DNA of 64,000 bases from Octopus sinensis (GCF_006345805.1 NC_042997.1:103168001-103232000); one strand, 5' to 3'. Shown: positions 7,481 to 62,186, counted from the first letter of the stretch. Notes: generated by a model not told the origin, from the sequence alone. Made by a program: numbers and translations.

Positions 7481-7754
7481 CAAACTTCATTAGGTAACAC
7501 TGGAATTTAAAACTTTAAAGAAAATAATTTTAAAAATTAGTGACTATTTAAATAATGTGTTCGTGGGTGGTTAATGAGTTGGGTGTGGTGTTGAAGAAGG
7601 AGCAATACCTCCTGAGATATGCATATACACTCATTACCTATTTTTTCTAGCTTCGATCTCATTGTTTAGAAAGACGTATTTGTATACGAAATGTAACTTT
7701 CAGTGTTGGCTATAATTTCTACAGGAAAACTGTATAGATAACTTAAAAGTGATA

Positions 7755-7983
7755 TACTCTTTTACTCTTTTACTCTTTTACTTGTTTCAGTCATTTGACT
7801 GCGGCCATGCTGGAGCACCGCCTTTAGTCGAGCAACTCGACCACGGGACTTATTCTTTGTAAGCCCAGTGCTTATTCTATCGGTCTGTTTTTGCCAAACC
7901 GCTAAGTGACGGGGACATAAACACACCACCATCGGTTGTCAAGCAATGCTAGGGGGACAAACACAGATACACAAACACACACA

Positions 7984-8028
<45 letters not shown>

Positions 8029-8185
8029 GACGGGCTTCTTTCAGTTTCCGTCTACCAAATCCACTCACAAGGCATTGGTCGGCCCGAGGCTATAGCAGAA
8101 GACACTTGCCCAAGATGCCACGCAGTGGGACTGAACCCGGAACCATGTGGTTGGTAACCAAGCTACTTACCACACAGCCACTCCT
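7755..8185 (-). mobile_element. SINE family A, full length (tRNA head, CORE-like CTTGGGCAAGTG box, internal (TA)n, GTAAAAGA tail)
   Basis: Reverse complement begins AGGAGTGGCTGTGTGGT (A box) then GGTTCAGTCCC (B box). Near-identical to copies at 20054, 44626 and 61706. Confidence 0.9.
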
Positions 8186-8376
8186 TAACTATATTAATGT
8201 TTGTTTTTATGTCCAAGTTAAATAAGACAATTTTATATTAAATAGAAGAATTACTCATACTTTCTGTGAAGTACATGTTTCCAGGAATTTGAATGACTGC
8301 GCAGAGGATCTCTTGCGATATAAGTGACACTTATAACCGAACACTAATCTTCGTTTGTGAAAGTGACTTTCTCGAA

Positions 8377-8449: not shown

Positions 8450-9135
8450 GGGCACTCGACATAATCTGTATGGGCGAAAGTGAAATAAGATAGATTATCT
8501 GTTTGTTAGCAAAGTTACTAGAACCAGTTGATTTTGTTCAAATATCGAAGCCGTTCCGCCAAAGCTTTTCCCCTTCTTGTGCAATGCTCACCAGGTATCA
8601 CGCTAATATAATCTAATTTTAAAACGAAAAATATTCCAAACCGCACACACATACACACACACGCACACACCCCACGCACACACACATACACACACAGTGT
8701 TTTCACTTTTAATAACTTTATAGAAATGACTTCCAACCACTAAATATGTTACTATTTGCTGTTAAGGAGATAAAATGAACACAATACCTTTTTCGTTATC
8801 AGATGTTAAGTGTAACTTGCACTGGGTTTGTTATTCACTCTGCAGAAGTCTTATCAATAGACCACATGTAAAACGCAGAGTGACTAGCATAGATAACAGA
8901 TGAACTTTAGATCCACTGTTATCGTAACATAAGGAAAATAGTTTGAAAGAGTGCGTGTGCCTATTACGTGTGACGACAGCGATAAAAGCGATAAACAATA
9001 ATTAAGGCCGGCCTCCGTTGTTTTAATTTCTAATTGAATCAGTATCTCTTCCCTTAAAGCATGGGTATTAAACAACCTCATGTCACCAGTCTCTAAATAA
9101 AATAGTTTTATATAGATGAATATATTTTCAGAGGT

Positions 9136-14064: not shown

Positions 14065-17000
14065 TACTGAAGATCAATAAGTATTGACTCTCGATGGCTG
14101 AAACACCAAGTAGGTGTTTGGACTGTGTGTGACTCTACTGATAGGAGGGGAAACTCGTGCTTATGTAATCTGCTCAGTCGATTTCAGCTGGTAGATAGGT
14201 GCAGACAAGATGTCCCAGACACTCCATTGTGGTCATGGACTAATAGCGATGCGTCATCTAGATCTTATTTAGACAGGATTCTAATTGGAAAAATAGACAA
14301 AAACCTAGTTAGTCGTCCACGATTTCACAATGTCAGCTGCAGTGACCACAAATTTGTGACCTGTAGGCTGGACTTAAATAAGTTATGGAGACAGGGATTC
14401 GGCTACTGCAAACTCAATAAGTCACTTTTGGCTCATGAGAAGTACAGGAGTTGGGTTAAACAGTTAGTGATGAGGACATTGTGTGGTACCATTATTAACA
14501 ACAAATGGTGGTATGTCCTCAAAAGAGCCATAAAATTTGAGTCCATTAGGTATAGCAAAAAGATAGTGGCTAAGAAAAATAGAGTAGAAAGGGCCCTAGA
14601 CGAAACACTGGAATCTGGCACCATGCCCCGAGTTTTAGCTGCGAGAATGGCGCTTAACCATCACCTAGAGGCTAAAAACGAAGGATGCATAGTCAGGGCT
14701 AAGCAACGCGCAATGGGACGGGAATGAATGAAAGCCGAGGGATGGGCTATCCAACGTGGCAATCATGATACCATAAGGTCTTTGATAAATAATAAAGTGA
14801 ACTTGGTAAACGAACCCGAGATGTGTCAGGTCTTTCGGGAGCAATTCGCCCTGCTTTTTCGGGAGGGGCGGCGGGCCGGAATGTAGGAGGTACCTTGCGG
14901 AGTTCCTCACTGGCGTGCTACGTCCCTTGTGGCGAGAAGCGGAGAACTGTAAGGGGCCGATCACAGTTGCGGGGGTGCAGGATGCTTTGTAGGACTGCGG
15001 CGGGAACAAGTCGCCAGGACTAAATGGTCTCGTCTACGAGCTTTTTAAGTCTGCCAGACTTGTTCGGGCACCTACTGGTATGCGTCTTCACCAACCCAGT
15101 TCTGTGAGCCGGGGAGTGGTGACGCTGCTTAGAAAGGACCCAAACAAGGGGGATATTATAGATAATTTCAGACCCATTACTCTGCTTAACACAGAATTGA
15201 AGATTTAGGCCAAGGTGTTAGTAAAAAGGATGGCGCGTGTCATAGGTGGAATCGTCAGGCAGGCACAAACTTATGCTGTTCCTGGTAGATCCATACACGA
15301 CAATCTCCACCTTCTACGCTAAACCTTAGAGAGGGTTAACGGGTCTCCTAGCAAGGGTGGGGTGCTGGTCCATTTAGACCAGCTCAAAGCTTTTGTCTGG
15401 TGTTGTTTCCCGCAGCATTCAGGCTCGGGCCCGTCTTCCGCGGGTGAATCATTGATTTATACAGCAACGGCGAGTGAACGGGTTCTTCTCGAAGCCGTTC
15501 AACATCAAGCGCTCTGTTCTTCAAGGATATCCTCTCTACCTCTTCTGTATATGTTAGCTCAAACCCTTACTGCCGAAGCTGGAGGACTTGAAAGGCTTCC
15601 CACACGATCTAGGTTGCAATAAGATTTCGGCGTACGCGGATGGTATCACCATCATCGTGTCTAATATGCTACACCTACAGAGGGTAGGGAAAGGACTACG
15701 AGGCGGTGGCAGGAGCAAAAGTTAACCGGGATAAGTCAGTCGGCTTGCAACTCGGCACCTGGAGAGGCAAGACGATACCTCCCAACACCGTCATAGGGTG
15801 TTGGGTGGAGGGGCCGGTTAAAATTCTAGGGATTTGGTTTGGTATAGACCTCAGGCTAGAGAAGAATAGGAGCGAGGTGACGAGCAGGGTGACCCACCTA
15901 ACTCAGACCTAGTCTGAGCGGTTGCTATCCCTGAAAGGAAGGGTGGAGGTCACAGGAGTGTTTATCACTTTTGTGATTACCTACCACCTAACCGTCGTGC
16001 CTTGCCCCCGTTCTTGGCTGATCAAGTTGGGGCAGCTGTTCTTCCGGTTTTTGTGAAGGGGTAGAAGTCCTCTTATAAAGCGCTCTGTCTGCTGCCAGCA
16101 TCTGCTAAAGGGTGTGTTAGGGATGCCTTGCTATGGTTATTGATGTGCAGACATGCGCTGAGTCTGAGGCATCTGTGGCTCTACCTGGATGATGAACAGG
16201 TGTGGTCACCGTTCATTCGGTTGTTACTTCTTGAGCTTAATAGTTTGATTGAACTAGAACCTTGGCTCAAATGTAGATCAAAGTTGGGTGCTTGGCAAGC
16301 GGATTGTCGTGAGGCACTTAAGCTTCTCTGTCACACGGACAACGCCAGCGTCGGGGGTTTCACCTCGTCTTTCTATAGAGGGTTGGTAAAGACTCAGTGT
16401 GACGACGGTCTCGGGGAGACTCTAGGTTTCGATGATAGTAAACTAGCTGACCTGAAGGACATTCGAGCCAGGACCCTTGAATAACTTCTAAGGATCCCTG
16501 GCCTGGCAGTGTTACCGAGGAGCCTTACGAGTTTGTGATAAACTCGCATTTAAACATTATCAATTATATCATCAACTACTATAGGCACGACCAACAAAGC
16601 TCTAATAGAATACATACACAACAATACAGACAACGTCACCGCCACCAACTTCGACAAAAACTTAAAAGAGAAGCTAAGTGAAAAGAACAACTATTTCTTT
16701 ATTGCCCACAGTGGACCAAACATAGAGGGGACGATACAAAGGAAGGAGGGGTAGATAAAACGAATAATTTTACAAAAGATGAATAGTTAAAAATTTAAGT
16801 TAAAAATTTATATAAATTAGATGATAACAAACAATGACACATAATGAAGTGGAGGACGGGTTTAGCTTCGATCCTGCAAGCCCCCCCCCCCAACATCGCT
16901 TGACAACCGATGGTGGTGTGTTTACGTCCCCGTAATTTAGCGGTTCGGCAAAATAGACCGATAGAATAAGTATTAGGTTTACAAAGAATAAGTCCTGGGG

Positions 17001-17075
17001 GTCGATTTCCTCGACTAAAGGCGGTGCTCCAGCATGGCCGCAGTCAAATGACTGAAACAAGTAAAAGAGTAAAGA

Positions 17076-17122
<47 letters not shown>

Positions 17123-17872
17123 CTTTCTTTAGAGGAATGGCTCTAAGAAATACAAACAATTCAAACAACTTTAAACAAAAAATGGGCTACAAGAACCCAG
17201 TGCTCTCATACTTGTTGCCTGTCCAATGTTCACCCATGTGCCCAAGATGCGAGCTGGACAGGGGAACCGTTCTGCACAAGATTGTGCAATGCTCCAAAGT
17301 TTCCGAAATGTAGGTTTACGTTGAAGACCTGCTGTCTCGGCTGGAAAGAGTATAACTGTCTTCCGAGGCGATTGTAAAGATTGTTCCTCCTTCCTCTTTT
17401 AACAAAGAAGGCAAGGCTTGTTTCCTCGCGGTGGTCGCTATGGCGAAAGAAGTGGTATGGAAGACCCGCGTGAAAAGAATCATGACAGGTATCTTCATCT
17501 CCAGGTTTGGATTGATTAATTTCCTCATTTATCATCTTAAGAGGGAAATAAGGGTGGAGAGAAAATGCCTGTCTCCTGATGTATATGGAAAAAGATGGAA
17601 GGCTGCAGCGAGTTTGTTGAGAATGAATGAACCCATATAGTATATCCATAAGGTTATACAAAAGGTTATAGTGGTAACACGAGGCTTGCAGGGTCGAAGC
17701 TAAACCCGTCCTCCACTTCATTATGTGTCATTGTTTGTTACCATCTAATTTATATAAATTTTTAACTTAAATTTTTAACTATTCATCTTTTGTAAAATTA
17801 TTCGTTTTATCCACCCTCCTTCATTTGTATCGTCCCCTCTATGTTTGGTCCCCTGTGGGCAATAAAGAAATA
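14065..17872 (+). mobile_element. 5'-truncated L1/Tx1-clade LINE (degenerate ORF2: APE end, RT, C-terminal Zn knuckle, 3' UTR), interrupted at 16552-17231
   Basis: APE motifs SRSYLDRI and SDH. RT motifs KSPGLNGL, NFRPITLLNTELK, GRSIHDNLH, LDQLKAF and AYADG. After the insertion: PMCPRC...LH...QC and AMAKEVVWKTR...RW. The 3' end is GTGGGCAATAAAGAAATAG. Many stops and frameshifts. Confidence 0.9.
16552..17231. other. Three-template local insertion inside the LINE
   Basis: 16552-16630 = reverse complement of 18341-18419; 16631-16882 = reverse complement of 17683-17934; 16881-17231 = direct copy of 20323-20693. Confidence 0.9.
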
Positions 17873-20005: not shown

Positions 20006-20053
<48 letters not shown>

Positions 20054-20054
<1 letters not shown>

Positions 20055-20219
20055 GGCGCAGGAGTGGTTGTGTGGTAAGTAGCTTACTTACCAACCACAT
20101 GGTTCCGGGTTCAGTTCCACTGCGTGGCACCTTGGGCAAGTGCCTTCTACTATAACCTCGGGCCGACTAAAGCCTTGTGAGTGGATTTGGTAGACGGAAA
20201 CTGAAAGAAGCCGAACGTA

Positions 20220-20288
<69 letters not shown>

Positions 20289-20516
20289 ATGTGTGTGTGT
20301 GTGTTTGTGTGTCTGTGTTTGTCCCCCCGCCCAACATCGCTTGACAACCGTTGGTGGTGCGTTTACGTCCCCGTAACTTAGCGGTTCGGCAAAATAGACC
20401 GATAGTATAAGTATTAGGCTTACAAAGAATAAGTCCTGGGGGTCGATTTCCTCGACTAAAGGCGGTGCTCCAGCATGGCCGCAGTCAAATGACTGAAACA
20501 AGTAAAAGAGTAAAGA

Positions 20517-20520
<4 letters not shown>
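20054..20520 (+). mobile_element. SINE family A, full length, flanked on both sides by (AAT)n
   Basis: AGGCGCAGGAGTGGTTGTGTGG head, CCTTGGGCAAGTG box, internal (TA)n(TG)n, and GACTGAAACAAGTAAAAGAG tail. Confidence 0.92.
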
Positions 20521-20557
<37 letters not shown>

Positions 20558-21714
20558 TATAATAATAATAATAATAATGTTAATTTTTCTTTAGAGGAAT
20601 GGCTCTAAGAAATACAAACAATTCAAACAACTTTAAACAAAAAATGGGCTACAAGAACCCAGTGCTCTCATACTTGTTGCCTGTCCAATGTTCTTATATT
20701 TGTTGTCCAATGCTCTCATACTTACTGCCAGTACCGCTGGTCATTCTTACCGTTATTTCTGATTTTGCTCCTTTCGTTGTAGCTTCTAATATATATGATT
20801 CCGGTGCTGTCATAAAATCTTGCAGTATAGGTGCAAACTTTGTTACAACCCACACCGTTGTTACAGATTTAGTTTATCTTACTAAATCTCAATAACTAAT
20901 CTCAATAACTTTAGTTTCTAATACAGTTGGTACTGTTGCAGTTCTTTCTGCTGTTGACATAAATACCGTTTTTACCATTGAAATAATTGCTTCTGATCTG
21001 ATTATAACTACTATCACCCACAGAGTGGGCGCTCCAATTTTTGTAACAGTATCAATAATATAGTTTGTCTTAAATATTTTACCTACTGCTTATCTGCTTC
21101 CATTCGCTTTATCACTTCTACCGGAACAACTCACTTAACAAAGATAACACAGGGCGCCTCTAAGTTTGATTTTTTGGGTGATTACAGATTAAATAAGGTA
21201 ATATAAGATCCACTTTTCCTCACTGTCGATAGATTTCTGACGTCATAAAATCAAATCACTTGTCTGCCATGGCTGTTTGTCTTCAATATGTCAACATGAA
21301 ATTACAACTCAAGGTTTTCTTTATTCTGAGGTATGAGGTATTTTGAATTGACGGAAAGTTTAAAAAAAGCCATAACTGTTACAATAAAGACTTCTAACAC
21401 ATAAACAAAGCTACAACAATTTGTTTTGGGAAAGAGGGTACAGTCAATTCATTCAACCCAGTACTTGACTTATTTTTGTAAAACAGATCGGTATTTATTC
21501 ATGCAGATGCAAAATCTACATTAGAGGAATCTGAAATCAGAACGTTATGGAGAGTAACTAAATAGCGCACATTATTTTTGTTCAGCAGCGCTCTACCGTT
21601 TTTATCAGACAATAACAAGAACAACAAAAACAATAACATTAAAAATATATCTTCCAATATTACCACAGAATCACAATTATTCAGTTAAAGAATAACCAAT
21701 TACACCCCACCCCA

Positions 21715-23384: not shown

Positions 23385-23457
23385 CGGCCTGCCATGAGAC
23401 TCGAACTCATATCCCTGTGATTACGCGTCAAGTGCTTTACCATTAAGCTAAACTGCC
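23385..23457 (-). pseudogene. tRNA-Thr-like module (left arm of inverted pair)
   Basis: GGCAGTTTAGCTTAATGGTAAAGCACTTGACGCGTAATCACAGGGATATGAGTTCGAGTCTCAT. D arm GCTT/AAGC, perfect T arm ATGAG-TTCGAGT-CTCAT, CGT at the anticodon position. Has G33 and a poor acceptor stem. Confidence 0.6.
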
Positions 23458-23557: not shown

Positions 23558-23628
23558 AGTTTAGCTTAATGGTAAAGCACTTGATGTGTAATCACAGGGA
23601 TGTGAGTTCGAGTCTCATGGCTGGCACC
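23558..23628 (+). pseudogene. tRNA-Thr-like module (right arm of inverted pair)
   Basis: AGTTTAGCTTAATGGTAAAGCACTTGATGTGTAATCACAGGGATGTGAGTTCGAGTCTCATGG. A and B boxes intact, TGT at the anticodon position. Confidence 0.6.
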
Positions 23629-26225: not shown

Positions 26226-26249
26226 ACATACATACTTACGTACGTACGT

Positions 26250-27278
26250 ATGTATGTATGTATGTATGTATGTATGTATGTATGTATGTATGTATGTATG
26301 TATGTATGTATGTATACATGCATGCATGTATGTATGTATGTCATTATTCAGTTTTATTTCAAGATTTCTTGCCAATAGAGAAAGAATCGGTTTCTAACCT
26401 AGATCCAAGGCTCCTTCATTGGAATTTCAGCATCAACAACAGGGTATTTTTGTATTTATGTATGTATACGTGCATATTTGTATGTCTTCTCATGCATATA
26501 CTTGCATATCTAGACATTCTCATATATACTTAAGTGATAAACTTAAGTTTTATAGATTTTTATAGTTCCTGTGATGGATTGGATCTGTCGACTATCTTCT
26601 TTATAGTTTCGAGAAGCCTAATTTTTCAAGATTGATATTTAGGCAGTTGGTATGTATGTATGTATGTATGTATGTATGTATGTATGTATGTATGTATGTA
26701 TGTGTGTATGTATGTGTGTATGTATGTGTGTATGTATGTGTGTATGTATGTGTGTATGTATGTATGTATGTATGTATGTATGTATGTATGTATGTATGTA
26801 TACATGCATGCATGTATGTATGTATGTCATTATTCAGTTTTATTTCAAGATTTCTTGCCAATAGAGAAAGAATCGATTTCTAACCTAGATCCAAAGCTCC
26901 TTCATTGGAATTTCAGCATCAACAGGGTATTTTTGTATTTATGTATGTATACGTGCATATTTGTATGTCTTCTCATGCATATACTTGCATATCTAGACAT
27001 TCTCATATATACTTAAGTGATAAACTTAAGTTTTATAGATTTTTATAGTTCCTGTGATGGATTGGATCTGTCGACTATCTTCTTTATAGTTTCGAGAAGC
27101 CTAATTTTTCAAGATTGATATTTAGGCAGTTGGTATGTATGTATGTAATGTATGTATGTATGTGTATGTATGTATGTATGTATGTATGTATGTGTGTGTA
27201 TGTATGTGTGTATGTATGTGTGTATGTATGTGTGTATGTATGTGTGTATGTATGTATGTATGTATGTATGTATGTATG

Positions 27279-27310
<32 letters not shown>

Positions 27311-29439: not shown

Positions 29440-31430
29440 GGCATTAAATAGCAAATGGATACTCCTGGGAAAATGATGTGTTTAACTGTGTATCGCGGAC
29501 ATGATTGCCATCTCTAAGGTCAAGACCTATTGGCACCAGTTGTGACGAGAAAGCAGCCGATTCGAGGCCCCTTCTATTTATGTCATTCAGACTAGCGTGT
29601 CGCGAGGACCAGGCCAGCCCTATGGCTGCAGGATAATGAATGCAGATCAAATTCATCGACTACCGCTCCACGACGACATTTGTGCGGCTCACACATATGG
29701 AGACCAAGGCGCTTGGCCACTCGGATACAAGTACACTCATCATCAAGAAGGGTACTGTTTGAAAAGGAGGGCACGAAATGGATCCCTGCGCCTTCTTGGT
29801 TGTGAAGCAAAACTGAGGAAGGCGACGCTGTGCTGATCTAAGTATGTCTCATTCCGTCTGAATACAAATTTTATTTGATATCGTCCCAATAACATTAGAC
29901 ATCTGTATTCTGGGGAACGGCAAGGCCTTCAACGGTATCATCAGCTTGAGCTGTCTCTGAATCCTGGGCCACATCGAGTTCAGCGACCTCGCGAAGTATC
30001 TCGCCGATGAGGGTGTGGATGAAGGATATTGGGGAAAGATAAACCAGCAGAGCTAGGTCCAATGCGGAACGTAGGCCAATGACACCGGATTTAACTGGTA
30101 GTTTAGTCTGTTGCCAGCCGGTACTGTCAATCCTGACATTGCACATCATTTCAGTTTAGAGAGGACGATATGGCGCACTGCGTAGTGAGAAAAGAATCTT
30201 AGGCAGGGAAAAGCAATTCCTCAAGAGTTTGAGTGCTGGGTGCATGTCAATGAGGTTCAATCTCTCAGTCGTGCCAGACAAGTCCTCAAGCTTGGTCTCT
30301 TGACACTCTGTTATGGCTTTTAAAAGGATTGAGAGCCAAGAATGCTAACAGCGTCCTTTGGTGTCAGCCAAGCCCCCGCCCCAAGAAATTTAGCCTCATC
30401 ATAGCTCATGTCTATATCATCTCTGGCTTGGACGGGTTGATCTCAAGCCCAAGAAGCTTTAGGGCTGGGATGACCTGCTGAAGTTGCCCAAATAGATTCA
30501 GCCAAGCCATCCGGGGTTGCGCCATCCAGATACCAGATACTGAAAGTGGAGGTGGGGGCGGACTGATCGGACTACATCATCGACAGCGAACGCAAAAATG
30601 AAGCGGACCAATAAAGTCACCCAGTTGGATATCTGTGGAAGAAATGATCCTGTTGTCAGTAACCATGTGTGTGCTGGATGTTCCATAGAAGAGGTATGCA
30701 TATGGGTGTAATGAGGGAGCACGTCTTAGATACATCTCCAAGATGTGGTCCCACCTAACATTGTTGAAGGCGTTTTTTTTTATATCCAGCTTCGACAGGG
30801 GTAAGGTGACGATGGAGATGTATGCTGTATGTAGTGTCAGGCCGCATGGACTGAAACTACACTTACACACTTCACTCCAAGCCTCAACTGGATAGGGTTT
30901 AGTGCCTCGATCAAGTCATTCCTCATTGAACTACATGCTATCCTGGATTCAAGTCATCGAAAGGCGTTGTCCACTCCTATTTGAAGGATGCCTTAATCCT
31001 TCTTCTTCAACGCAATCAGAAATGGCAGAAGAAGCTCGCACGAAGAAGACTATCTGTTAGAGCAGTGTTATAGATCGCAGCAAACGTGCTCCCGCCTCGG
31101 AGGAGTGTGAAAAGATGAAATCTCTGAGGTGGCTGTGTTTCAGACAATCTACTCCACCATTGCAACTCACAGGAAGGGACCTCAAGGCAGTAGCCACATC
31201 ATCGCTGAATGCGGTCAAATTTTTGTTACTGTTAGGGCGCCGGTGGGCAGTTTGAGAAAAGCGAGAGTCTAGTTGGTGAGGGGTTTCCGCCCGAAGTTTT
31301 GAGAGGGTGGCAACTCTGGCAGTGACATCGATGCAGGGATTCCAAAGTGTGTCTAGTGAGTTTGACACAAGAGAAGTAGAAGAAATTGGTACAGTTAGAC
31401 CACTTCTTTTCTTCCGCCAATTGTTCGTGG
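29440..31430 (-). mobile_element. Degenerate CRE-clade non-LTR retrotransposon (RT plus Zn finger and start of restriction-like endonuclease)
   Basis: KLDIKKNAFNNVRWD, SSTDIQLGDFIGPLHFC, WQQTKLPVKSGVIGLRSA, RLGLHMCEPHKCRRGAVVDEFDLHSLSC, and RHASLNDINRRGLESA..PIGLDLRDG are CRE-type motifs. Confidence 0.8.
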
Positions 31431-31482
31431 TATAGGTGTGGCATTATTCAGTCTCCTGCTTTGCGAAAGGCTGGGAAGAGGA

Positions 31483-31699
31483 TGTACGTAGAAGATGCTT
31501 GAGCATAACCAGAACAATGTTTATACATACTAACATACATACATACATACATACATACATACATACATACATACATACATACATCACTCGAAGCAACAAA
31601 CCGCATATTTGGCGTGAGAGGCTATTTATCGAAAATATATACTATTAGGGAGTATAACTCCAAACTTACATATTTGCATAATAGTGGTTTTATCTCTAA

Positions 31700-31758
<59 letters not shown>

Positions 31759-31866
31759 GATAGATACATAGATACATATATATATACATACATATATATA
31801 CATATATATACATATATATACATACATACATGTATATATACATGCATATATATACATACATACATG

Positions 31867-31943
<77 letters not shown>

Positions 31944-32100
31944 CATATATACATTCATACATACATACATACATATATATATATATTTATATATACCATG
32001 TATGTATTTGCTATCCCTTCTTTCCTGAGCGTCCAATAATACTTTATTTGTTCCACGTCCTTGCGTTGTTGTTTTTTTGTTTTTGTTTTCTTGTTTGGAT

Positions 32101-32141
<41 letters not shown>

Positions 32142-33293
32142 TCCTCCACGTGAAAAAATGTATTGTTCGGATTTTCTAAATATGGCTTTTCAGTGTGATT
32201 CCCATATTACATTACTATACACAATGATTGATTACTATGTAAATTCACAGCTGATTCCGATAGCGAGTTTACTGTGAAAACTATGATTCTGTGAATCCAT
32301 ATTTTCAACTACTCTTCTACATTTGCATATACGCGTGCGTGCACACACATACTCGCACACATACACATACCTATATGGTTAAGTCCTTTGAATTGCCGTC
32401 CTCTCTACACAGCTGGTGTGCTGCCATGGAAAGTGATAACCTAAAGAAATATTTGCATTTTAGCTCATTTGTTTGTGCTTACTATAAGCACAAATACTCG
32501 AGTCCTTTTTGCATACTGTAAACTATACTATCAAGAATGAAATCTGCACTCATCAACGGTACACGCGTTCGTGGAATACTTAGATAACTCTCACACTAAT
32601 TGAACGAGCAGGTTGTCCACTTGCACGAATTATGTGCCTCTTAAACTTTTGAAAAAAAACAAAAAAACTCATACATATACAGACACACATTCACTGACAC
32701 AAGCACACATACACATACACACACATTAATATGCACTTATGTATGAATGGGTGGACGGTTCGATATGTAAGTGGTAGGATGATGGACGGATGAATGACTA
32801 TGAAAATACGAAAAAAGAGATCCAAAGAAACAGTTGAGACTGTTCTTACTTCTAAATAAATAAACCTTCACGTAAAATTACATGCTCATTATTTATTATT
32901 AGTTTATAGATACATAAATTCTAATCTTTCTCAGTTTTTCGTACCTGAAATTTGCACAATATTTGCATACATACATACATACATACATACATACATACAT
33001 ACATACATACATACATGCTTAGTGGCATTTCGTCTGCCGCTACGTTCTGAGTTCAAATTCTGCCGAGGTCGGCTTTGCCTTTCATCCTTTCTGGGTCGAT
33101 AAATTAAGTACCAGTTATGCACTGGGGTCGATGTAATCGACTTAATCCCTTTGTGTGTCCTTGTTTGTCCCCTCTATGTTTAGCCCCTTGTGGGCAATAA
33201 AGAAATAAGAAACAAAAATATTCCTGTTTTGCATTAATGTTATAGCGTACTATATTTCTCTCCTCTTCTTTTTCAATATATATAAATATATTT

Positions 33294-33324
<31 letters not shown>

Positions 33325-33338
33325 GAGAGAGAGAAAGA

Positions 33339-33386
<48 letters not shown>

Positions 33387-34176
33387 CTATCGCACACATG
33401 CACATTATAATGATTTTAAATTTAGTACATAGCCACCAATTTCGAGGGAGGAAGTCACTCACATAGATTCCAGTGTTCAAATTGCTACTTATTTTAAGGA
33501 ATTGTCTATTTTATCGACCTTGAGTGAGTGAATGGCAAAATCAACCTTGGCGCTAACTGAACTCAGAACGTAAAGACGGACGAAATACCTATTTCTTTAT
33601 TGCCCTCAAGGGGCTAAACAGAGAGGGGACAAACAAGGACAGACAAAGGGATTAAGTCCATTACATCGACTCCAGTGCGTAACTGGTACTTTATTTATCG
33701 ACCCCGAAAGGATGAAAGGTGAAGTCGCCCTCGGCAGAATTTGAACTCAGAACGTAACGGCAGACGAAATACCACTAAGCATTTTGCCCAGCGTGCTAAC
33801 GATTCTGCCTGTTCACGACCTTAAACATACATTATAGTGACTTTTAAAATGAAATATAAAAAAACTATGACCCAACTTTGTAGCAGAAGCAAATTTGTTT
33901 AAAATTTGGTATTTACTAAGGTTTTATATTCTTCAATTAAGGGTCATGGCTTAGTGGTTGCTGGTATTCGGCTCACGATCGTAAAGTCGTGTTTGATTCC
34001 TGGTGGTGCGTTGTGTACGTAGAAGATGCTTGAGCATAACCAGAACAATGTTTATACATACTAACATACATACATACATACATACATACATACATACATA
34101 CATACATACATACATACATACATCACTCGAAGCAACAAACCGCAGATTTGGCGTGAGAGGCTATTTATCGAAAATA
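31483..34176. other. About 155-bp duplication flanking a 2.4-kb two-template inverted insertion
   Basis: 31483-31637 matches 34014-34176. 31642-33014 = reverse complement of about 45845-47169. 33015-34016 = reverse complement of 40167-41141. Confidence 0.92.
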
Positions 34177-39921: not shown

Positions 39922-40238
39922 ATTGGCACTCCGTCGGTTACGATGACAGGTGTTCCAGTTGATCCGATCAAAAGAACAGCCTGCTAGTGAAATTAACGTG
40001 GAAGTGTATAAGCACTCTACTGACACGCGTAATTTTTAACGTCGTTCTCAGAGAGATTCAACGTGACACAGACTGTTATAAGGCTGGTCCTTTGAAAAAC
40101 AGGTATTATTCATTTTCGCCAGCTGAGTGGACTAGAGAAACATGAAATAACGTGCCTTGTTCAAGCACACAACGCACCACCAGGAATCAAACACGACTTT
40201 ACGATCGTGAACCGAATACCAGTAACCACTAAGCCATG
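39922..40238 (-). mobile_element. SINE family C (tRNA head, CTTGAACAAGGCAC box)
   Basis: Reverse complement starts TGGCTTAGTGGTTACTGGTATTCGG...GATTCCTGG (A and B boxes) and ends CGTAACCGACGGAGTGCC. A fragment of the same body lies at 32560-32640. Confidence 0.7.
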
Positions 40239-40361
40239 ACCCTTAATTGAAGAATATAAAACCCTAGTAAATACCAAATTTTAAACAAATTTGCTTCTGC
40301 TACAAAGTCGGGTCATAGTTTTTTATATATTTCATTTTAAAAGTCACTATAATGTATGTTT

Positions 40362-40770
40362 AAGGTCGTGAACAGGTAGAATCGTTAGCAAGCTGGGCAA
40401 AATGCTTAGTGGTATTTCGTCTGCCGTTACGTTCTGAGTTCAAATTCTGCCGAGGGCGACTTCACCTTTCATCATTTCGGGGTCGATAAATAAAGTACCA
40501 GTTACACACTGGGGTCGATGTAATGGACTTAATCCCTTTGTCTGTCCTTGTTTGACCCCTCTCTGTTTAGCCCCTTGAGGGCAATAAAGAAATAGGTATT
40601 TCGTCCGTCTTTACGTTCTGAGTTCAGTTAGCACCAAGGTTGATTTTGCCATTCACTCACTCGAGGTCGATAAAATAGACAATTCCTTAAAATAAGTAGC
40701 AATTTGATCACTGGAGTCTATGTGAGTGACTTCATCCCTCGAAATTGGTGGCTATGTACTAAATTTTAAA
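40362..40770 (+). mobile_element. SINE family B dimer
   Basis: Head plus unit with the L1-type tail, then a headless unit with the second tail type. Same organisation as 9136-9720. Confidence 0.85.
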
Positions 40771-40795
40771 TCATTATAATGTGCATGTGTGCGAT

Positions 40796-40863
<68 letters not shown>

Positions 40864-40948
40864 AATATATTTATATATATTGAAAAAGAAGAGGAGAGAA
40901 ATATAGTACGCTATAACATTAATGCAAAACAGGAATATTTTTGTTTCT

Positions 40949-41181
40949 TATTTCTTTATTGCCCACAAGGGGCTAAACATAGAGGGGACAAACAAGGACA
41001 CACAAAGGGATTAAGTCGATTACATCGACCCCAGTGCATAACTGGTACTTAATTTATCGACCCCGAAAGGATGAAAGGCAAAGTCGACCTCGGCAGAATT
41101 TGAACTCAGAACGTAGCGGCAGACGAAATGCCACTAAGCATTTCACCCTGCGTGCTAACGTATCTGCCAGTTCGCCACCTT
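40949..41181 (-). mobile_element. SINE family B monomer with 22-bp TSD
   Basis: AAACAGGAATATTTTTGTTTCT at 40927-40948 and 41182-41203. Confidence 0.92.
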
Positions 41182-41214
41182 AAACAGGAATATTTTTGTT
41201 TCTGTGAGAAATTA

Positions 41215-43390
<2,176 letters not shown>

Positions 43391-43394
43391 GTCC

Positions 43395-43900
43395 CAGATT
43401 TTTTCAATCTCCTCTTCCTTTACATCTTTAGAAAACAGCTCACATCTATACCCCACGTATTTCCTTCTCTTTCACTTTACACTCTCGCTTGCTCCCACTT
43501 CCTCCCTTCGACACTAACATTGCACACTATACGGTTGCACATACACCCTCAAACACGCAGCTCTATTATCAAACGCCTCTACACACATATATCCAAAACC
43601 ATATGCACAGCTCTGGCTTATACCTGTCTCAATACACGGCTACAATCTCATAAGCGAACAACCCGTTCTTCATCAATTTTTAACTCCCGCCATAAAACCG
43701 GATTTCCAACTGGCCTCTAAACCACTCGGCTTTTCGTATTTATTTTCGTATACACTGTTCCTTCTCTTTACGTTTATATTTTTCTCCTGAAGAAGGACTT
43801 GCATCCGAAACGTCAAGATCATTTCCCTTGTTTTTCAGGGTTAAGCTGATACAAAACATGTCAGAACTTTTCCTTCCTCTTTTTTATTACTTGCTTTATG
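43395..43900 (+). mobile_element. PLE-like 3'/terminal-repeat fragment
   Basis: Pyrimidine/CA-rich tract ending in a hammerhead-like motif, embedded between microsatellites. The same layout occurs at 54375-54610 and 58560-58790. Confidence 0.45.
43783..43818 (+). ncRNA. Minimal type-I hammerhead ribozyme motif (canonical core)
   Basis: TCTC-CTGAAGA-A-GGA(CTTGCA)TCC-GAAA-CG-TC-AAGA: CUGANGA core, stem II, GAAA, palindromic ACGU stem III, GUC site. Stem I has 3 bp plus a C.A mismatch. Confidence 0.55.
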
Positions 43901-43966
43901 TGCATTGCTTTGAACATTATACATACATACATACATACATGTATACATACACACACACACACACAT

Positions 43967-44003
<37 letters not shown>

Positions 44004-44625
44004 AATGTGTGCGTGTGTGCGTCTGAGTGTGTGCTTGTATGTGTGTGAGTGTGTATATATGTATATATTTGTCTGTGTATTTAGTTCATTAGATACATGA
44101 CTATTTTCAAATTATATCTTTTTTGATGTAGGTCTTAATTTCATTTGGTTTGGAACAACGGAGTTCCCAAATTCACATCCGACATTTAAAGCCATTCACA
44201 TTCTCATTTTCAGGAACTGAATTGAATATATTTGGCGTTTGTGTCATGTCATGTATGATGACTGATTAAAAGCGGGTAGCTACCAGAATCTATAGCACCC
44301 CGAGTAAAATGCTTCGCGGCTTTTCGTACGTCTTTATGTTCAGAGTTTCAATTCTTTGTCTTTCAACCTTTCAAGGTCGTAAAAATATGTACCACTTAAA
44401 CACTGGGGGCGATAGAATCGAATTCTCCTTCCCTTGTGCTTCCTGGTCTTGTACCAAAATTTGAAACCTATATAGTGACTGAATTCATGTAGACTGTTAA
44501 AAGCATTTTGTCTATTTGTATCATGTATCCGCAGCCACATGTTGATCTATGCCGTATTCAAATTTTGATCCTCAGGTTTTACATATTTTATGTAAGTAGT
44601 AAAGAGTTATTTTTTTTTATATATA

Positions 44626-45030
44626 TAGGTGCAGGAGTGGCTGTGTGGTAAGTAGCTTGCTTACCAACCACATGGTTCCGGGTTCAGTCCCACTGCGTGG
44701 CATCTTGGGCAAGTGTCTTCTGCTATAGCCTCGGGCCGACCAATGACTTGTGAGTGGATTTGGTAGACGGAAATTGAAAGAAGCCTGTCGTATATATGTA
44801 TAATATATATGTGTATGTGTGTGTATATGTTTGTGTGTCTGTGTTTGTCCCCCTAGCATTGCTTGACAACCGATGCTGGTGTGTTTACGTCCCCGTCAGT
44901 TAGCGGTTCGGCAAAAAAGACCGATAGAATAAGTACTAGGCTTACAAAGAATAAGTCCCGGGGTCGATTTGCTCGACTAAAGGCGGTGCTCCAGTATGGC
45001 CACAGTCAAATGACTGAAACAAGTAAAAAA
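44626..45030 (+). mobile_element. SINE family A, full length
   Basis: Head, box, internal microsatellite and tail as in the other copies. Confidence 0.92.
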
Positions 45031-45365
45031 AAATATATATATGTTTGTGTTAATTTAGCATTGTATTGCGATAAGAGTCGGGTATCCATTCAATACTATA
45101 TTAAGTGCGTATTTTCCGCTTGTATTTCCCTATCAAATTTTATTTCGTGTATGTGTGTAATGCATCATGTTGCAATTTGTGAGCTTATGTGGGAGTGTTA
45201 TACTAGTCTATCCAATGTAAGAACTTGTAACTTGAAGTTTATATCCTTTAGTTTTACTCATTTATGCTTTATGTAGGTCGATAAAAATTCGTTCTCGGGC
45301 TCACATAGTTGTAGTGTGTTAAAAAATAAACCCAAAGCAAAAGCCCCATAATCAATATAGCATAA

Positions 45366-45411
<46 letters not shown>

Positions 45412-45607
45412 GGCGGAAATCCTTATATTGCTAACTACGAATAACCACATGCTCATTGGATTTTTATCTCTGGATATGGACCGGCAATAGTTTTTCACTT
45501 TGTCCAACAATCAGTTTCAAACGACCAAGCGGTCACACATAAATAGTATTCGATATACACGGACACACGCACACATACACGTATACAAACACACACGAAT
45601 ATATATA

Positions 45608-45644
<37 letters not shown>

Positions 45645-45679
45645 GTATGAATGTGTCTATATATGTATGTGTATGTATG

Positions 45680-45815
45680 TATGTCATTATTCAGTTTATT
45701 TCAAGATTTCATTATAAAGTGTCCTAGCTACAACATCATGTATGTAGAACCGGTTTCTAACCTAGATCCAAAGCTCTTTCATTGGAATTTCAACATCAAC
45801 ATCAGGGTATTTTTG
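45680..45815. repeat. Short dispersed repeat embedded in (GTAT)n
   Basis: TCATTATTCAGTTT..TTTCAAGATTTC...GGTTTCTAACCTAGATCCAA.GCTC.TTCATTGGAATTTCA...CAGGGTATTTTTG also occurs at 26341-26455 and 26827-26935. Possibly a PLE terminus. Confidence 0.7.
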
Positions 45816-46707
45816 TATGTATGTATGTATGTATGTATGTATGTATGTATGTATGTATGTATGTATGTATGTATGTATGTATGTATGTATGTATTGTGCA
45901 AATTTCAGGTACGAAAAACTGAGAAAGATTAGAATTTATGTCTCTATAACCTAATAATAATAATGACATGTAATTTTACGTGAAGGTTTATTTTTTTAGA
46001 AGTAAGAACAGTCTCAACTGTTTCTTTGGATCTCTTTTTTCGTATTTTCATAGTCATTCATCCGTCCATCATCCTACCACTTACATATCGAACCGTCCAC
46101 CCATTCATACATAAATGCATATTAATGTGTGTGTATGTGTATGTGTGCTTGTGTCAGTGAATGTGTGTCTGTGTATATGTATGAGCTTTTTTTTTTTTTT
46201 CAAAAGTTTAAGAGGCACATAATTCGTGCAAGTGGTCAACCTGCTCGTTCAATTAGTGTGAGAGTTATCTAAGTATTCCACGAACGCGTGTACCGTTGAT
46301 GAGTGCAGATTTCATTCTTGATAGTATAGTTTACAGTATGCAAAAAGGACTCGAGTATTTGTGCTTATAGTAAGCACAAACAAATGAGCTAAAATGCAAA
46401 TATTTCTTTAGGTTATCACTTTCCATGGCAGCACACCAGCTGTGTAGAGAGGACGGCAATTCAAAGGACTTAACCATATAGGTATGTGTATGTGTGCGAG
46501 TATGTGTGTGCACGCGCGCGTATATGCAAATGTAGAAGAGTAGTTGAAAATATGGATTCACAGAATCATAGTTTTCACAGTAAACTCGCTATCGGAATCA
46601 GCTGTGAATTTACATAGTAATCAATCATTGTGTATAGTAATGTAATATGGGAATCACACTGAAAAGCCATATTTAGAAAATCCGAACAATACATTTTTTC
46701 ACTGGAG

Positions 46708-46773
<66 letters not shown>

Positions 46774-46916
46774 ATCCAAACAAGAAAACAAAAGCAAAAA
46801 ACAACAACGCAAGGACGCGGAGCAAATAAAGTATTATTGGACGCTCAGGAAAGAAGGATTGCATATACATACATGGTATATATAAATATATATATATGTA
46901 TGTATGTATGTATGTA

Positions 46917-46958
<42 letters not shown>

Positions 46959-47529
46959 CATGTATGTATGTATGTATATATATGTATGTATGTATATATA
47001 TGTATGTATATATACATGTATGTATGTATATATATGTATATATATGTATCTATGTATCTATCTGTGTGTGTATATATATATATTATTATATATAATATAT
47101 ATAAAATATAAATTAGAGATAAAACCACTATTATGCAAATATGTAAGTTTGGAGTTATACTCCCTAATATTATATATATGTGTGTGTGTGTCTACATATA
47201 TATATGATTAAAAATATATGCGAAACGAGTGAACAAATAATGCCTTGTGGAATCGGCTCCAAATGAGTAGGAGAGATGGTCCCATGAATCAAAACATCTG
47301 TTGAACTGGCTGACATTAAGGAAAAAAAATGTCTGTTTGAAAAAGAAACAGGACAGCTATGTAGATGTATTTCTGGATCGCAGCATCATCCGTACAACAC
47401 TTGTTTTACTTTGACATTAGCAGATGAAATGCACAGACTTTTTATCTAGTCAGTAAAATGAAAATGCGCAAGGAAGATGATTAAAATAATATCAAATGGC
47501 ATGCAAGATGGGTTCTTCGATTTCGATGC

Positions 47530-52439: not shown

Positions 52440-52472
52440 CATATATACATATATATATATATGTATACACAT

Positions 52473-52507
<35 letters not shown>

Positions 52508-52515
52508 ACACATCT

Positions 52516-52553
<38 letters not shown>

Positions 52554-53070
52554 AAATTAAAAAAGGAAAATATGTATATATATATATATTATATATATAT
52601 ATATTATATATATATAATATATATAAGAAATTAAAAAAGGAAAATACGCACTTACATAGTTTCAATATAATTTTTAAAAATTATATTAAAACTATGTAAG
52701 TGAGTATTTTCTTTTTTAATTTCTTATATACATTACAACTCACCACGTGGAATAATCGAAATTATATATATATAGTAGTAATAACAGAAAAGAGGAATTT
52801 TGATTATTCCCACGTGGTGAGTTGTAATGTATATAAGAAATTTAAAAAGGAAAATACGCACTTACATAGTTTTAATATAATTTTTAAAAATTATATTAAA
52901 ACTATGTAAGTGCGTATTTTCCTTTTTTAATTTCGTATGTATATATATATATATATGTAAGATGTGTATACATATGATTTTGATTTTGATTTTTCCAGTT
53001 TCAGCTAATGAGCTGTGGCCATGCTGGGCCATATATATATATATATATATGTGTAAGATGTGTATACATA
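52440..53070. repeat. Nested quasi-palindrome
   Basis: Two roughly 110-bp spacerless palindromes (52620-52730 and 52830-52940) on either side of an inverted repeat (52731-52763/52797-52829). Outer inverted blocks TGTATACACATCTTACAT/ATGTAAGATGTGTATACA. Confidence 0.88.
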
Positions 53071-54374
53071 TATATATGTATATATATATATATGTATATA
53101 TATATGCATATATTTGTATATATATGTATATGTATGCATATATGTGTATATATATATGCATATATAATTTATATGTATATGTCTATAAATATGTGTGTAT
53201 GTGTATATATATATATATAAATATATGCATATATAATGTATATGTATATGTATATATATGTATATGTGCGTACGTATATGTATAGATATCTGTGTGTATA
53301 TGTATATATAGATGCATATATATATATGTATATGTATAGATATCTGTGTGTATATGTATATATAGATGCATATATATATGTATGTATATATATATTTATA
53401 TACGTATATGCGCAGGCATAGCTGGTTCCGGGTTCTGTCACACTACGTGGCACCTGGGCAAATGTTGTCTACTATAGCCTTCGACCGACCAAATCTATTT
53501 CAGTATTACACCATTGCAGTATTACGCTTCAAAAGTGAAATAACATCTCTATTTTAATGTGAGATAATAGTTTCACTTTTAATAGATTTCACTATTAATA
53601 CTTTCACACCGACCAGGCTATCAGATGCTGCTACACATCGCTGGTCACAATGCGCTTCAAATGACGCCACCCCGCTGGCTAAGCGAGCAGGCCAACAGAA
53701 GAAAGAGTGAGAGAAAGTTGTGGGGAAAGAGTACAGCAGGGATCGCCACCACCCTCTGCTGGAGCCGCGTGGAGTTTTATATACACGCATATACATCCAT
53801 ATACGCTTACACACACACATACAAACGCACACACAACTACACGCACATACATACACACACACATCAATGAACCCACACATACATCCCATACACACGGCAC
53901 ACAATTATACATACACGCACACACTTATACATACATATATATACACACACACGCACGTACAAGCACACACGCACACATACACTAAGTTAAGCACAGTTAC
54001 TCGCCACACACCCAAACTCTACGCATACACACACGAACACACACATACACACACACACACTACAAACAAAGCACACACACGATACATATACATACACGCA
54101 CACACACATACCTCTTTGCTTTGACCTGTGGCTGGACACAAAAAACACCACTCCTTATTCTTACTACTGGCCAGCTACTAGCCAGTTGTTCGCCCTACAC
54201 ACATAGACACACACGCACACACACACGTGTCATCATTGAACACATACACACACACGCGCACACGCAGACGTACGCGAACACACACATCCACACACATTCC
54301 CCCTCTCACTTTCCTTGTCTTTGACATACTACCTACTGTCTTTGAAAACTCTCCTTTCTTTAAAAAACATTATT

Positions 54375-54683: not shown

Positions 54684-54771
54684 GTGCGTGTGGTTTGTGT
54701 TTGTGTGTATGTGTTCGCTTCGTAAGTTGTATCTATCCATGCTCTTTATATAGATTAGTTTATTTTATTTA

Positions 54772-55997
54772 CGAGGGGCGTTCAATAAGTAATGCCCCTG
54801 ATCCACTTGAAGTTGTTTGATCTAGCTGAAATTTTGCATGTGCAATTACTTATATCTCTATAGATTAAGTGGCAAATTACAGCTCTGAACTAATTGTGGT
54901 TTCTGATTTACAGGTGTTTGAACTGAGTCAAGTGTGAAATGGAGTCTGTTGAATGTCGAGCAGTGATCCGGTTTTTGTATTTGACAGGACGCACACTACG
55001 GGAGACTTTTGATGATATGAAAGTAACTTATTGTGATAATGCCCCATCATATGACCTTGTAAAACGCTGGCATCGTGAATTCAAACATGGTTGGAACTCT
55101 GTGGAAACAGCTCCCAGATCTGGTCGCCCCCTTCTGCCATTGATGAGGCATCTGTCCGTCAAGTTGAGGCTGCCATTTTGGAAGTTCAACGCATAACTAT
55201 TCGCGAAATAGCCCATGAGGTCAAGATTAGTACCGGGTCTGTGGAAACTATCATTCATGACCATTTGCACATGCAAAAGGTGCCTGCCAGATGGATTCCC
55301 AGGTTGCTCACATCTTTCCAGAAGCAAGAACGCGTCGATTGCTCGAGGATGAATTTGGAGATGTGCCAAGAAGATGAGTCAACATTTTTCAAAAGACTGA
55401 TTACACAGGATGAAACCTGGGTCCATCACTATGATCCAGAGACCAAAGCCCAGTCAATGCAGTGGAAGCACCGTGACTCCCCTCCTCCAAAGAAGGCAAG
55501 GGTGCAGCCCTCTGCTAGCAAGATCATGCTCACAGTCTTCTGGGACCAGGACGGAGTAGTGATGACAGATTTCCTGGCAAATGGTGCCACAATTACAGGA
55601 GCCTATTATGCTTCACTTTTGAGGAAATTAAGAGAAGCTATCAAACTCGCGTGTCGCCAGATCAGAAGCACAGGCGTGCGGCTATGAAATCCTCCCCCAT
55701 CCCCCTACTCTTCTGACCTTGCACCTTCTGATTTCCACCTCTTCCCAGCCATGAAGTTGTTTTTGAAAGGAAAGCGTTTCCCAGATGATGCAGCCTTGAT
55801 TTCTGAAGTCATGTCGTGGCTGGAGGACCAAGCTGGTGTCTTCTACAGAAACGGTCTTCAGAGCTGCATCAAACGATGGGAGAAATGCGTAACTCTTGGT
55901 GGTTCCTATGTAGAAAAAGACTAATAACTGTGCCAAGTTTCGTTGCTCTACTGCTATGGGAAGTGAGTCAGGGGCATTACTTATTGAACGCCCCTCG
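54772..55997 (+). mobile_element. Near-full-length mariner (DD34D-type) transposon
   Basis: Perfect 30-bp TIRs CGAGGGGCGTTCAATAAGTAATGCCCCTGA (54772-54801 and 55968-55997). TA on both sides. Confidence 0.97.
54939..55924 (+). pseudogene. Mariner transposase pseudogene
   Basis: MESVECRAVIRF...RSGRP, a frameshift, then WIPRLL, ITQDETW and HPPYSSDLAPSDFHLF. The LL.DNA.H segment carrying the second catalytic Asp is deleted between REAIK and RVARSEAQ. Confidence 0.93.
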
Positions 55998-56299
55998 TAT
56001 CTCTATATTTTTTATTTCTTCCAGGTATGTGACAAATATATTTATATATTTGTTTAATTATCTATTTATATATCTATTTTATATATTTATTAATATTTCA
56101 TACACCTATCTATATTTCTTATGAGTATCTCAGGTAAGTGCATATATGCCTGTTGTGTGTGTATTTCCCTGTATGTTTTTGTGTATCATTTACGATTCCT
56201 TTTGATTTTTTTTTTGCTTTTGTTTATTTTTTGTTTTCTTCCTCTCACTTCTCATCCCTTCTGTCTTTAGTCATTTGGTGTGGTGCGGTGTGGTGGTAG

Positions 56300-61320: not shown

Positions 61321-61705
61321 GCAATCACTGGTATTGCAACCAGACTTGAAATGCTATATTTGCTCCAACTAATGTGTGGTGTTATTAAATATTGTTTAGT
61401 TTTGACTTTTGTCACGTCTTGAGATAATCATGAATATGTGAAGGTTGGAGTAGATTGCAGGAGAAAGTGAAGCAGTTTGGTGAATAAGCCAAATTCCGCA
61501 GGTCTCTAAATAGGTTCGGCAGATGGTGAGAAGGAGATCAGCAATGGGGCTTCGCATCCCAGTCCGATCAGGGCACAAAAGAAGCGTTATACCCTTGCGG
61601 TCAGCAGAAGTCAAATGTGTTTTACTACTACCTGCGATCAGTGAGTGTGCTGAACTTGGCCTTGGAAAGAACCAATTTACTTTGCTCTGTTTTTAATTAC
61701 TGATA

Positions 61706-61925
61706 TACTCTTACTCTCTTTTTACTCTTTTACTTGTTTCAGTCATTTGACTGCGGCCATGCTGGAGCACCGCCTTTAGTCGAGCAAATCGACCTCGGGA
61801 ATTATTCTTTGTAAACCCAGTACTTATTCTATCGGTCTCTTTTGCCGAACCGCTAAGTGACGGGGACGTAAACACACCAGCATCGGTTGTCAAGCAATTC
61901 TAGGGGGACAAACACAGACACACAA

Positions 61926-61956
<31 letters not shown>

Positions 61957-62133
61957 CATATATACGACAGGCTTCTTTCAGTTTCCGTCTACCAAATCCA
62001 TATCCACTCACAAGGCATTGGTCGGCCCGGGGCTATAGCAGAAGACACTTGCCCAAGATGCCACGCAGTGGGACTGAACCCGGAACTATGTGGTTGGTAA
62101 GTAAGCTACTTACCACACAGCCACACCTGCGCC

Positions 62134-62135
<2 letters not shown>
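61706..62135 (-). mobile_element. SINE family A, full length
   Basis: Near-identical to 7755-8185. Confidence 0.92.

Positions 62136-62186
<51 letters not shown>

Follow-up and report, generated by a model that had tools for sequence, protein, structure and literature searches.

Complex rearrangements ascribed to FoSTeS were reportedly described by Lee, Carvalho and Lupski in 2007. Human structural-variant catalogues list dispersed and inverted dispersed duplications (the dDUP classes), which are descriptions of outcomes and not of mechanisms. For MMBIR, as set out by Hastings, Ira and Lupski in 2009, the hallmarks are complexity with discontinuous templates, inverted segments and 2-5 bp of microhomology, and a return of synthesis behind its point of departure yields a duplication (PMC2621351). 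Iterative template switching has also been held responsible for complex insertions in which copy number changes slightly at the target (Gu et al. 2016, PMC5120786). The templated inserts reported for polymerase theta are 2-35 bp long, commonly 5-15 bp (PMC7454005; PMC11724301).

Here we analysed a stretch of 64,000 nucleotides from Octopus sinensis (GCF_006345805.1, NC_042997.1:103168001-103232000), hereafter the window, in which positions 31483-34176 hold an inverted, two-piece copy of neighbouring DNA set between two copies of a 155-bp block. The locus resembles FoSTeS/MMBIR rearrangements in its discontinuous inverted segments, in microhomology of 2-5 bp at every junction, in templates lying nearby in cis and in a duplication of the return-behind type. 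It differs from the human cases, which usually extend over tens of kb to Mb and are recent or de novo, in being 2.4 kb long, old (about 1.6% diverged) and carried by an invertebrate; furthermore, no low-copy-repeat architecture is evident, and it is microsatellites and an inverted SINE pair that are found at or near the switch points. As in the dDUP classes, the copy of a nearby segment has been inserted in inverted orientation, to which the octopus case adds an internal skip and junctions defined at the level of single bases. With the iterative-switch insertions of Gu et al. (PMC5120786) it shares a duplicated segment at a non-adjacent locus, junction microhomology and a slight gain of copies where the insertion took place, but those are large clinical events, often interchromosomal, whereas the octopus event is intrachromosomal, confined to 16 kb and of kilobase scale. 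Polymerase theta-mediated end joining (TMEJ) likewise copies a nearby template and starts and ends at microhomology; the octopus tracts are, however, 30-100 times longer than 2-35 bp, and the target was duplicated rather than deleted. Finally, in the multi-fragment capture and large templated insertions of yeast (PMC11724301), several genomic pieces are likewise found at one site with short microhomology, but the octopus pieces are collinear, share one orientation, derive from one neighbouring region and are accompanied by a 155-bp duplication.

Architecture of the insert and its sources

Self-BLAST of the window reproduced the arrangement put forward in the original prediction, a two-piece inverted insert inside a 155-bp duplication, almost base for base, with one correction: the upper end of the first source segment lies at 47177 and not at 47169. 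The duplicated target site, block D, is present on the + strand as D1 (31483-31637), which contains (ATAC)15 at 31523-31584, and again in direct orientation as D2 (34014-34176). The two copies differ by one mismatch (T at position 31606 of D1, G in D2) and by 8 bp in the length of the (ATAC)n tract, D2 having two extra ATAC units. Between them lies about 2.4 kb of non-coding DNA, consisting of the reverse complement of 47177→45837 joined to the reverse complement of 41141→40167. The first of these pieces, A′ (31635-33016, minus strand), was recovered as two overlapping matches, 31635-31940 with the reverse complement of 47177-46876 (88%, in a TA-rich microsatellite) and 31776-33016 with that of 47102-45837 (93.5%, gaps included), and ends in (CATA)12.8 at 32966-33016. 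The second, B′ (33015-34016, minus strand), starts inside a truncated SINE and matches the reverse complement of 41141-40167 at 95.3%. The tracts measure 1,379 bp for A′ and 997 bp for B′; both are inverted and collinear, and their templates lie 6-15.5 kb away on the same molecule.

Source segments A (45837-47177, + strand) and B (40167-41141, + strand) are both intact, and each continues into unique flanks, B running without a break into the sequence below 40167. The lower end of A falls in (TGTA)20 at 45814-45894, and within this repeat the exact exit point and the upper edge of the skipped source are ambiguous. The skipped stretch, 41142-45836 (about 4.7 kb), has left no remnant in the copy. 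It comprises the remainder of a SINE, a (TA)n tract of 2.2 kb and 2.4 kb of DNA that is for the most part unique and carries one interspersed repeat of about 420 bp (44607-45028). The (TA)n tract itself (41213-43388) is 2,176 bp long, with about 1,135 units and a G+C content down to 12%, and is likely to be a fragile, cruciform-forming site.

Given the repeat content of the region, which is full of SINEs and other repeats, and the ability of some transposons to capture host fragments, we considered whether the insert could be the product of a mobile element, whether by transduplication of the Helitron or Pack type, as a composite DNA transposon or through retroposition. Outside SINEs and microsatellites, however, the A and B sequences are present exactly twice in the 64-kb window, with the source copies running into unique flanks, and A, B and both target flanks have no further match there. 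The insert also contains microsatellites and cuts a SINE. Its ends, which read TATAC... and ...TTGTGT, carry no terminal inverted repeats and no poly(A) and are not the 5'-TC...CTRR-3' termini of Helitrons, and the flanking repeat is 155 bp rather than a short target-site duplication of fixed length. An origin by mobile-element activity is thus extremely unlikely. Inversion at a staggered break was rejected on geometry, D1 and D2 being direct and not inverted repeats.

A truncated SINE identifies the template

The direction of copying can be read from a SINE in source segment B. In the source, the element is complete (40949-41181, minus strand) and has on either side the same 22-bp target-site duplication, without a mismatch between its two copies (40927-40948 and 41182-41203); with these it spans 40927-41203, and on the reverse strand the duplicated 22-mer reads AGAAACAAAAATATTCCTGTTT. 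In the copy, the SINE starts abruptly at 33015, the equivalent of 41141, and only the truncated element (33015-33207) is present, together with a single 22-mer, the downstream one, at 33208-33229; the first 40 bp of the SINE (41142-41181) and the 5' duplication are missing. Because what the copy lacks starts within the SINE, a later insertion into the source cannot account for it. The SINE, intact with its duplications in the source and truncated in the copy, therefore points to the 40-47 kb region as the template, and on this evidence that locus is ancestral and 31638-34013 is the derived copy. The same argument from the whole and the cut SINE had been made at the outset, and the exact pair of duplications set against the single 22-mer bears it out.

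The SINE is one of an inverted pair (40357-40594 and 40949-41186), formed by two copies of the same 233-bp element 354 bp apart. Folding of the pair as single-stranded DNA is predicted to give a stem some 240 bp long (dG -269 kcal/mol, z = -34). The pair was carried into the copy, where it lies at 33015-33207 and 33590-33782, with the second SINE copy covering 33590-33827, and is the only real inverted repeat within the insert.

Divergence between copy and source

In full pairwise alignments, which include the microsatellites, segment A differs from its copy by 34 substitutions in 1,313 bases (2.6%), 21 of them transitions, and segment B by 19 in 974 bases (2.0%), 12 of them transitions; the lengths of the microsatellite tracts also differ between copy and source. 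Once microsatellites were masked, the values were 10/835 (1.2%) for A, 18/899 (2.0%) for B and 1/93 (1.1%) for D, with a pooled divergence of 1.6%. These values correct the initial estimate by eye, which had put copy and source about 2-3% apart. By Fisher's test, A and B do not differ (p = 0.25), nor does D differ from A and B pooled (p = 1.0). The statistically indistinguishable divergence of A, B and D fits a single age and a single event, so that all three may have arisen together in one old, inherited event. Two nested insertions of different age, one for A and one for B, were considered and rejected, the age difference not being significant (p = 0.25). The pooled value of 1.6% implies a long history of inheritance for the structure, and from this divergence since the event we infer that the arrangement passed through the germline. 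Substitutions within 120 bp of a junction numbered 8 in 365 bp, compared with 20 in 1,369 bp elsewhere; this gives no significant enrichment of the kind that error-prone MMBIR synthesis might be expected to leave (p = 0.22), which counts somewhat against that mechanism, although later neutral divergence would mask any original signal.

The same alignments bear on the question of whether the structure was created by the assembly, as a chimeric contig or by misplacement of a second haplotype of the 40-47 kb region. In some marine invertebrates, alleles can differ by as much as the 1-2% seen here. An artefact would, however, need three chimeric joins, each of them at microhomology, and a 155-bp direct duplication with a substitution and a microsatellite length of its own, in a window with zero Ns. 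Moreover, uncollapsed haplotigs would not be inverted and split in two, as the copy is, and the substitutions are mostly transitions and not homopolymer errors. Transition-biased substitution together with microsatellite drift looks like evolution rather than sequencing or consensus error. The argument originally drawn from the divergence of copy and source against an assembly echo consequently holds, and the sequence makes an artefact very unlikely.

Microhomology at the three junctions

Each of the three novel junctions shows short microhomology when read directly, as the original prediction had stated. At the left junction, which reads CGAAAATA, TATAC and TATTAGGG in succession, the trinucleotide ATA (31635-31637) is common to D and source A and can be assigned to either parent. 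At the middle junction, (CATA)n...CAT is followed by GCTTAGTGG, and AT (33015-33016) is common to A and B. At the right junction, GCGTTGTGT is followed by ACGTAG, and TGT (34014-34016) is common to source B and D (31483-31485). No filler bases are present at any of the three. Among 200,000 random joins drawn from the 64-kb window, 18% had microhomology of at least 2 bp and 6.6% of at least 3 bp, and the joint chance of 3, 2 and 3 bp under random joining in this window is about 8e-4. It should be noted that the left junction lies in AT-rich sequence of low complexity, where 3-bp matches are cheap, which weakens that junction somewhat. Non-allelic homologous recombination was rejected, as the junctions share just 2-3 bp. 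A search for tRNA or Rfam identity at the right junction (40167-40240) gave no credible match.

The exit from A falls within (CATA)n, and the landing point in B, 41141, lies in one arm of the 240-bp inverted SINE pair and 72 bp from the 2.2-kb (TA)n tract, although the window is too rich in microsatellites for a claim of enrichment.

Microhomology of 2-3 bp is also compatible with the ligation by NHEJ or alt-EJ of two free fragments from 40-47 kb into a staggered break at D, with the duplication of D resulting from fill-in of 155-nt overhangs, and the joining of several pieces of DNA at a single break, with microhomologies of 0-20 nt, is on record (PMC11724301). Under such capture, however, both fragments would have to share orientation and source order, for which the chance is about 1 in 4 if capture is random, and both would have to come from one nearby 7-kb stretch. 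Nor would one expect all three junctions to have at least 2 bp of microhomology and no filler, and the stagger of 155 nt that the 155-bp duplication flanking the insert would demand is unusual. The source segments are still present, so the event was copy-based and not a cut-and-paste capture. We therefore regard end-joining capture as improbable.

Polymerase theta had been named in the original prediction, next to FoSTeS/MMBIR, as a possible author of such junctions. It is a hallmark of this polymerase that its templated inserts have microhomology at both ends, as is the case here, and the templates used in TMEJ may be many kb away (PMC7454005). The length of the tracts speaks against it: 1,379 and 997 bp call for processive, BIR-like synthesis, and since reported templated inserts are just 2-35 bp, polymerase theta fits poorly, and TMEJ with templated insertions is highly improbable as the source of the structure.

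The middle junction allows a further course of events, in two steps. An inverted copy of 40167-47177 (about 7 kb) would have arisen together with the duplication of D and would later have lost 4.7 kb through a deletion joined at AT, running from the (CATA)n tract to the SINE and promoted by the unstable, cruciform-prone (TA)n tract. After interior loss from a single 7-kb copy, the middle junction would look identical, and from the sequence a deletion and a template switch are indistinguishable; 2 bp of microhomology is typical of end-joining deletions as well. The missing stretch holds the (TA)n tract, just 72 bp from one end of the supposed deletion, and the adjacent inverted SINE pair forms a very stable hairpin. 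The other deletion end, however, is 2.4 kb from the tract, no remnant of the 4.7 kb is found in the copy, two independent rare events would be required at one locus, and discontinuous templates are a stated hallmark of MMBIR (PMC2621351). A and B are also without a difference in age, though the two-step course predicts none either. The (TA)n tract and the SINE-pair hairpin could each plausibly have set off a deletion, and a template switch just as well. Because discontinuity is a hallmark of MMBIR and a deletion would be a second rare event, we give a single multi-switch event more weight than copying followed by deletion, which is unlikely on the present evidence, although it is the main rival.

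Replication-type template switching as the preferred explanation

The structure is best explained by one microhomology-primed event of the MMBIR/FoSTeS type, with three template switches and a return 155 bp behind the point of departure, a reading to which we assign a probability of roughly 0.6. The mechanism class favoured in the original prediction is borne out insofar as inverted discontinuous segments, microhomology of 2-3 bp and the duplication correspond to published features (PMC2621351); its claims of a fixed arrangement and of several switches within one event go further than the sequence allows. The templated segments are inverted and discontinuous, forming two pieces with a 4.7-kb skip, although a deletion at a later date could produce the same skip; microhomology of about 2-5 bp without long homology is present at every novel junction; the templates were retained, with the source SINE complete and flanked by its target-site duplications; and the 155-bp block D surrounds the insert in direct repeat, as a return behind the departure point would leave it.

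The path of switches was read from the sequence, and we infer the enzymes. A growing 3' end that was extending the + strand through the target site would have departed from its template once it had passed 31637. Pairing by ATA, it would have annealed again to the + strand at 47177, which lies 15.5 kb downstream, and from there it would have copied backwards over 1.34 kb. Synthesis would then have come off inside the (CATA)n microsatellite at about 45837 and re-annealed through AT at 41141, skipping 4.7 kb that includes the 2.2-kb (TA)n tract. After a further 0.97 kb had been copied, down to 40167, TGT would have brought the end back onto the original template at 31483, which is 155 bp short of its exit; block D would be duplicated because of this return behind the departure point. 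In such a scheme, the nascent + strand would have exchanged its minus-strand template for the + strand lying ahead, which for a rightward-moving fork would be the lagging-strand template. The product would then have been inherited and have diverged by about 1.6% from its templates, with additional changes in microsatellite length.

Genomic setting

The window has a G+C content of 36% and contains many microsatellites, SINE-like repeats and fragments of LINE and mariner elements. Its SINE families match a 36-kb locus of Octopus bimaculoides 69 times at 77-87% identity. No protein-coding host gene was found at or near the insert, and the insert itself contains just short ORFs, most of them translations of microsatellites. 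Ten ORFs of the window, including all those that span junctions, are absent from the protein collection, and 25-mers from D and segment A are absent from the metagenome contigs. Immediately upstream of D1, a 103-aa ORF on the minus strand (31057-31368) resembles by eye a motif of the N-terminal region of LINE reverse transcriptases; this non-repeat ORF beside the insert had no Pfam match, and an exact look-up in the protein collection returned nothing. By eye, the sequence just upstream of D1 looks like a decayed minus-strand LINE reverse-transcriptase ORF, and if 31057-31368 is indeed a LINE remnant, the insert landed in old transposon sequence. A LINE-like ORF in the window had just two distant matches.

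A mariner-like element occupies 54770-55999, and its ORF (55091-55687) matches the Pfam family Transposase_1 as well as sequences from many marine invertebrates. Over about 1.2 kb it is 88-90% identical at the DNA level to a locus of the mantis shrimp Oratosquilla oratoria, which matches the window just at this element, and its identity with the mariner copy of the Octopus bimaculoides locus is just 73%. Horizontal transfer of the transposon between cephalopod and stomatopod lineages may account for this pattern.

Several other repeats were observed in the window. Inverted repeats at 21182-21397/22632-22848 (98.6% identical, enclosing 1.2 kb) and 16630-16882/17683-17935 (96.9% identical, enclosing 0.8 kb) may represent young foldback elements or DNA elements with long terminal inverted repeats; no target-site duplications of either pair were obvious by eye. 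The (GTAT)n-rich stretch 26244-27305 is duplicated in tandem (period about 486 bp, 96.8% identity). A palindromic region some 690 bp long occupies 52443-53131; it has 82% self-complementarity, its centre near 52790 and arms rich in TA and GTAT. The repeat of about 420 bp found in the skipped stretch belongs to a family with at least five copies in the window at 88-93% (7750-8194, 16886-17231, 20049-20693, 44607-45028 and 61701-62156), and it is present also in the 36-kb Octopus bimaculoides locus (8796-9024 and 31303-31680, about 85-87%). Two weak matches to the tRNA model, at 23386-23457 (minus strand, 31.4 bits) and 23562-23618 (+ strand, 29.4 bits), lie just above the Rfam gathering score and within an inverted repeat (23286-23454/23558-23734), where ARAGORN found no tRNA; they are probably the tRNA-derived heads of SINEs.

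Implications

The event is of a known kind and its mechanism class is well established, so that the value of the locus is that of a worked example and not of a discovery. It provides a base-resolved, multi-junction templated insertion in the germline of a non-model invertebrate, with the ancestral templates still next door. The insert, which is non-coding and repeat-rich, implies no function, and no gene is affected as far as seen. It did leave behind a pair of 2.4-kb inverted repeats 6-13 kb apart, which could later mediate an inversion. A narrower and rather doubtful proposal is that expulsion of the growing end from (CATA)n and its re-priming beyond the (TA)n tract and the SINE hairpin constitute a natural record of switching triggered by microsatellites or hairpins; if this were true, such switching could systematically create small inverted segmental duplications in the microsatellite- and SINE-rich genomes of cephalopods, and the resulting duplications could serve as substrates for inversions or hairpin RNAs. 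Collectively, these observations suggest that the replication-type rearrangement signature of human disease and cancer also shapes genomes such as that of the octopus.
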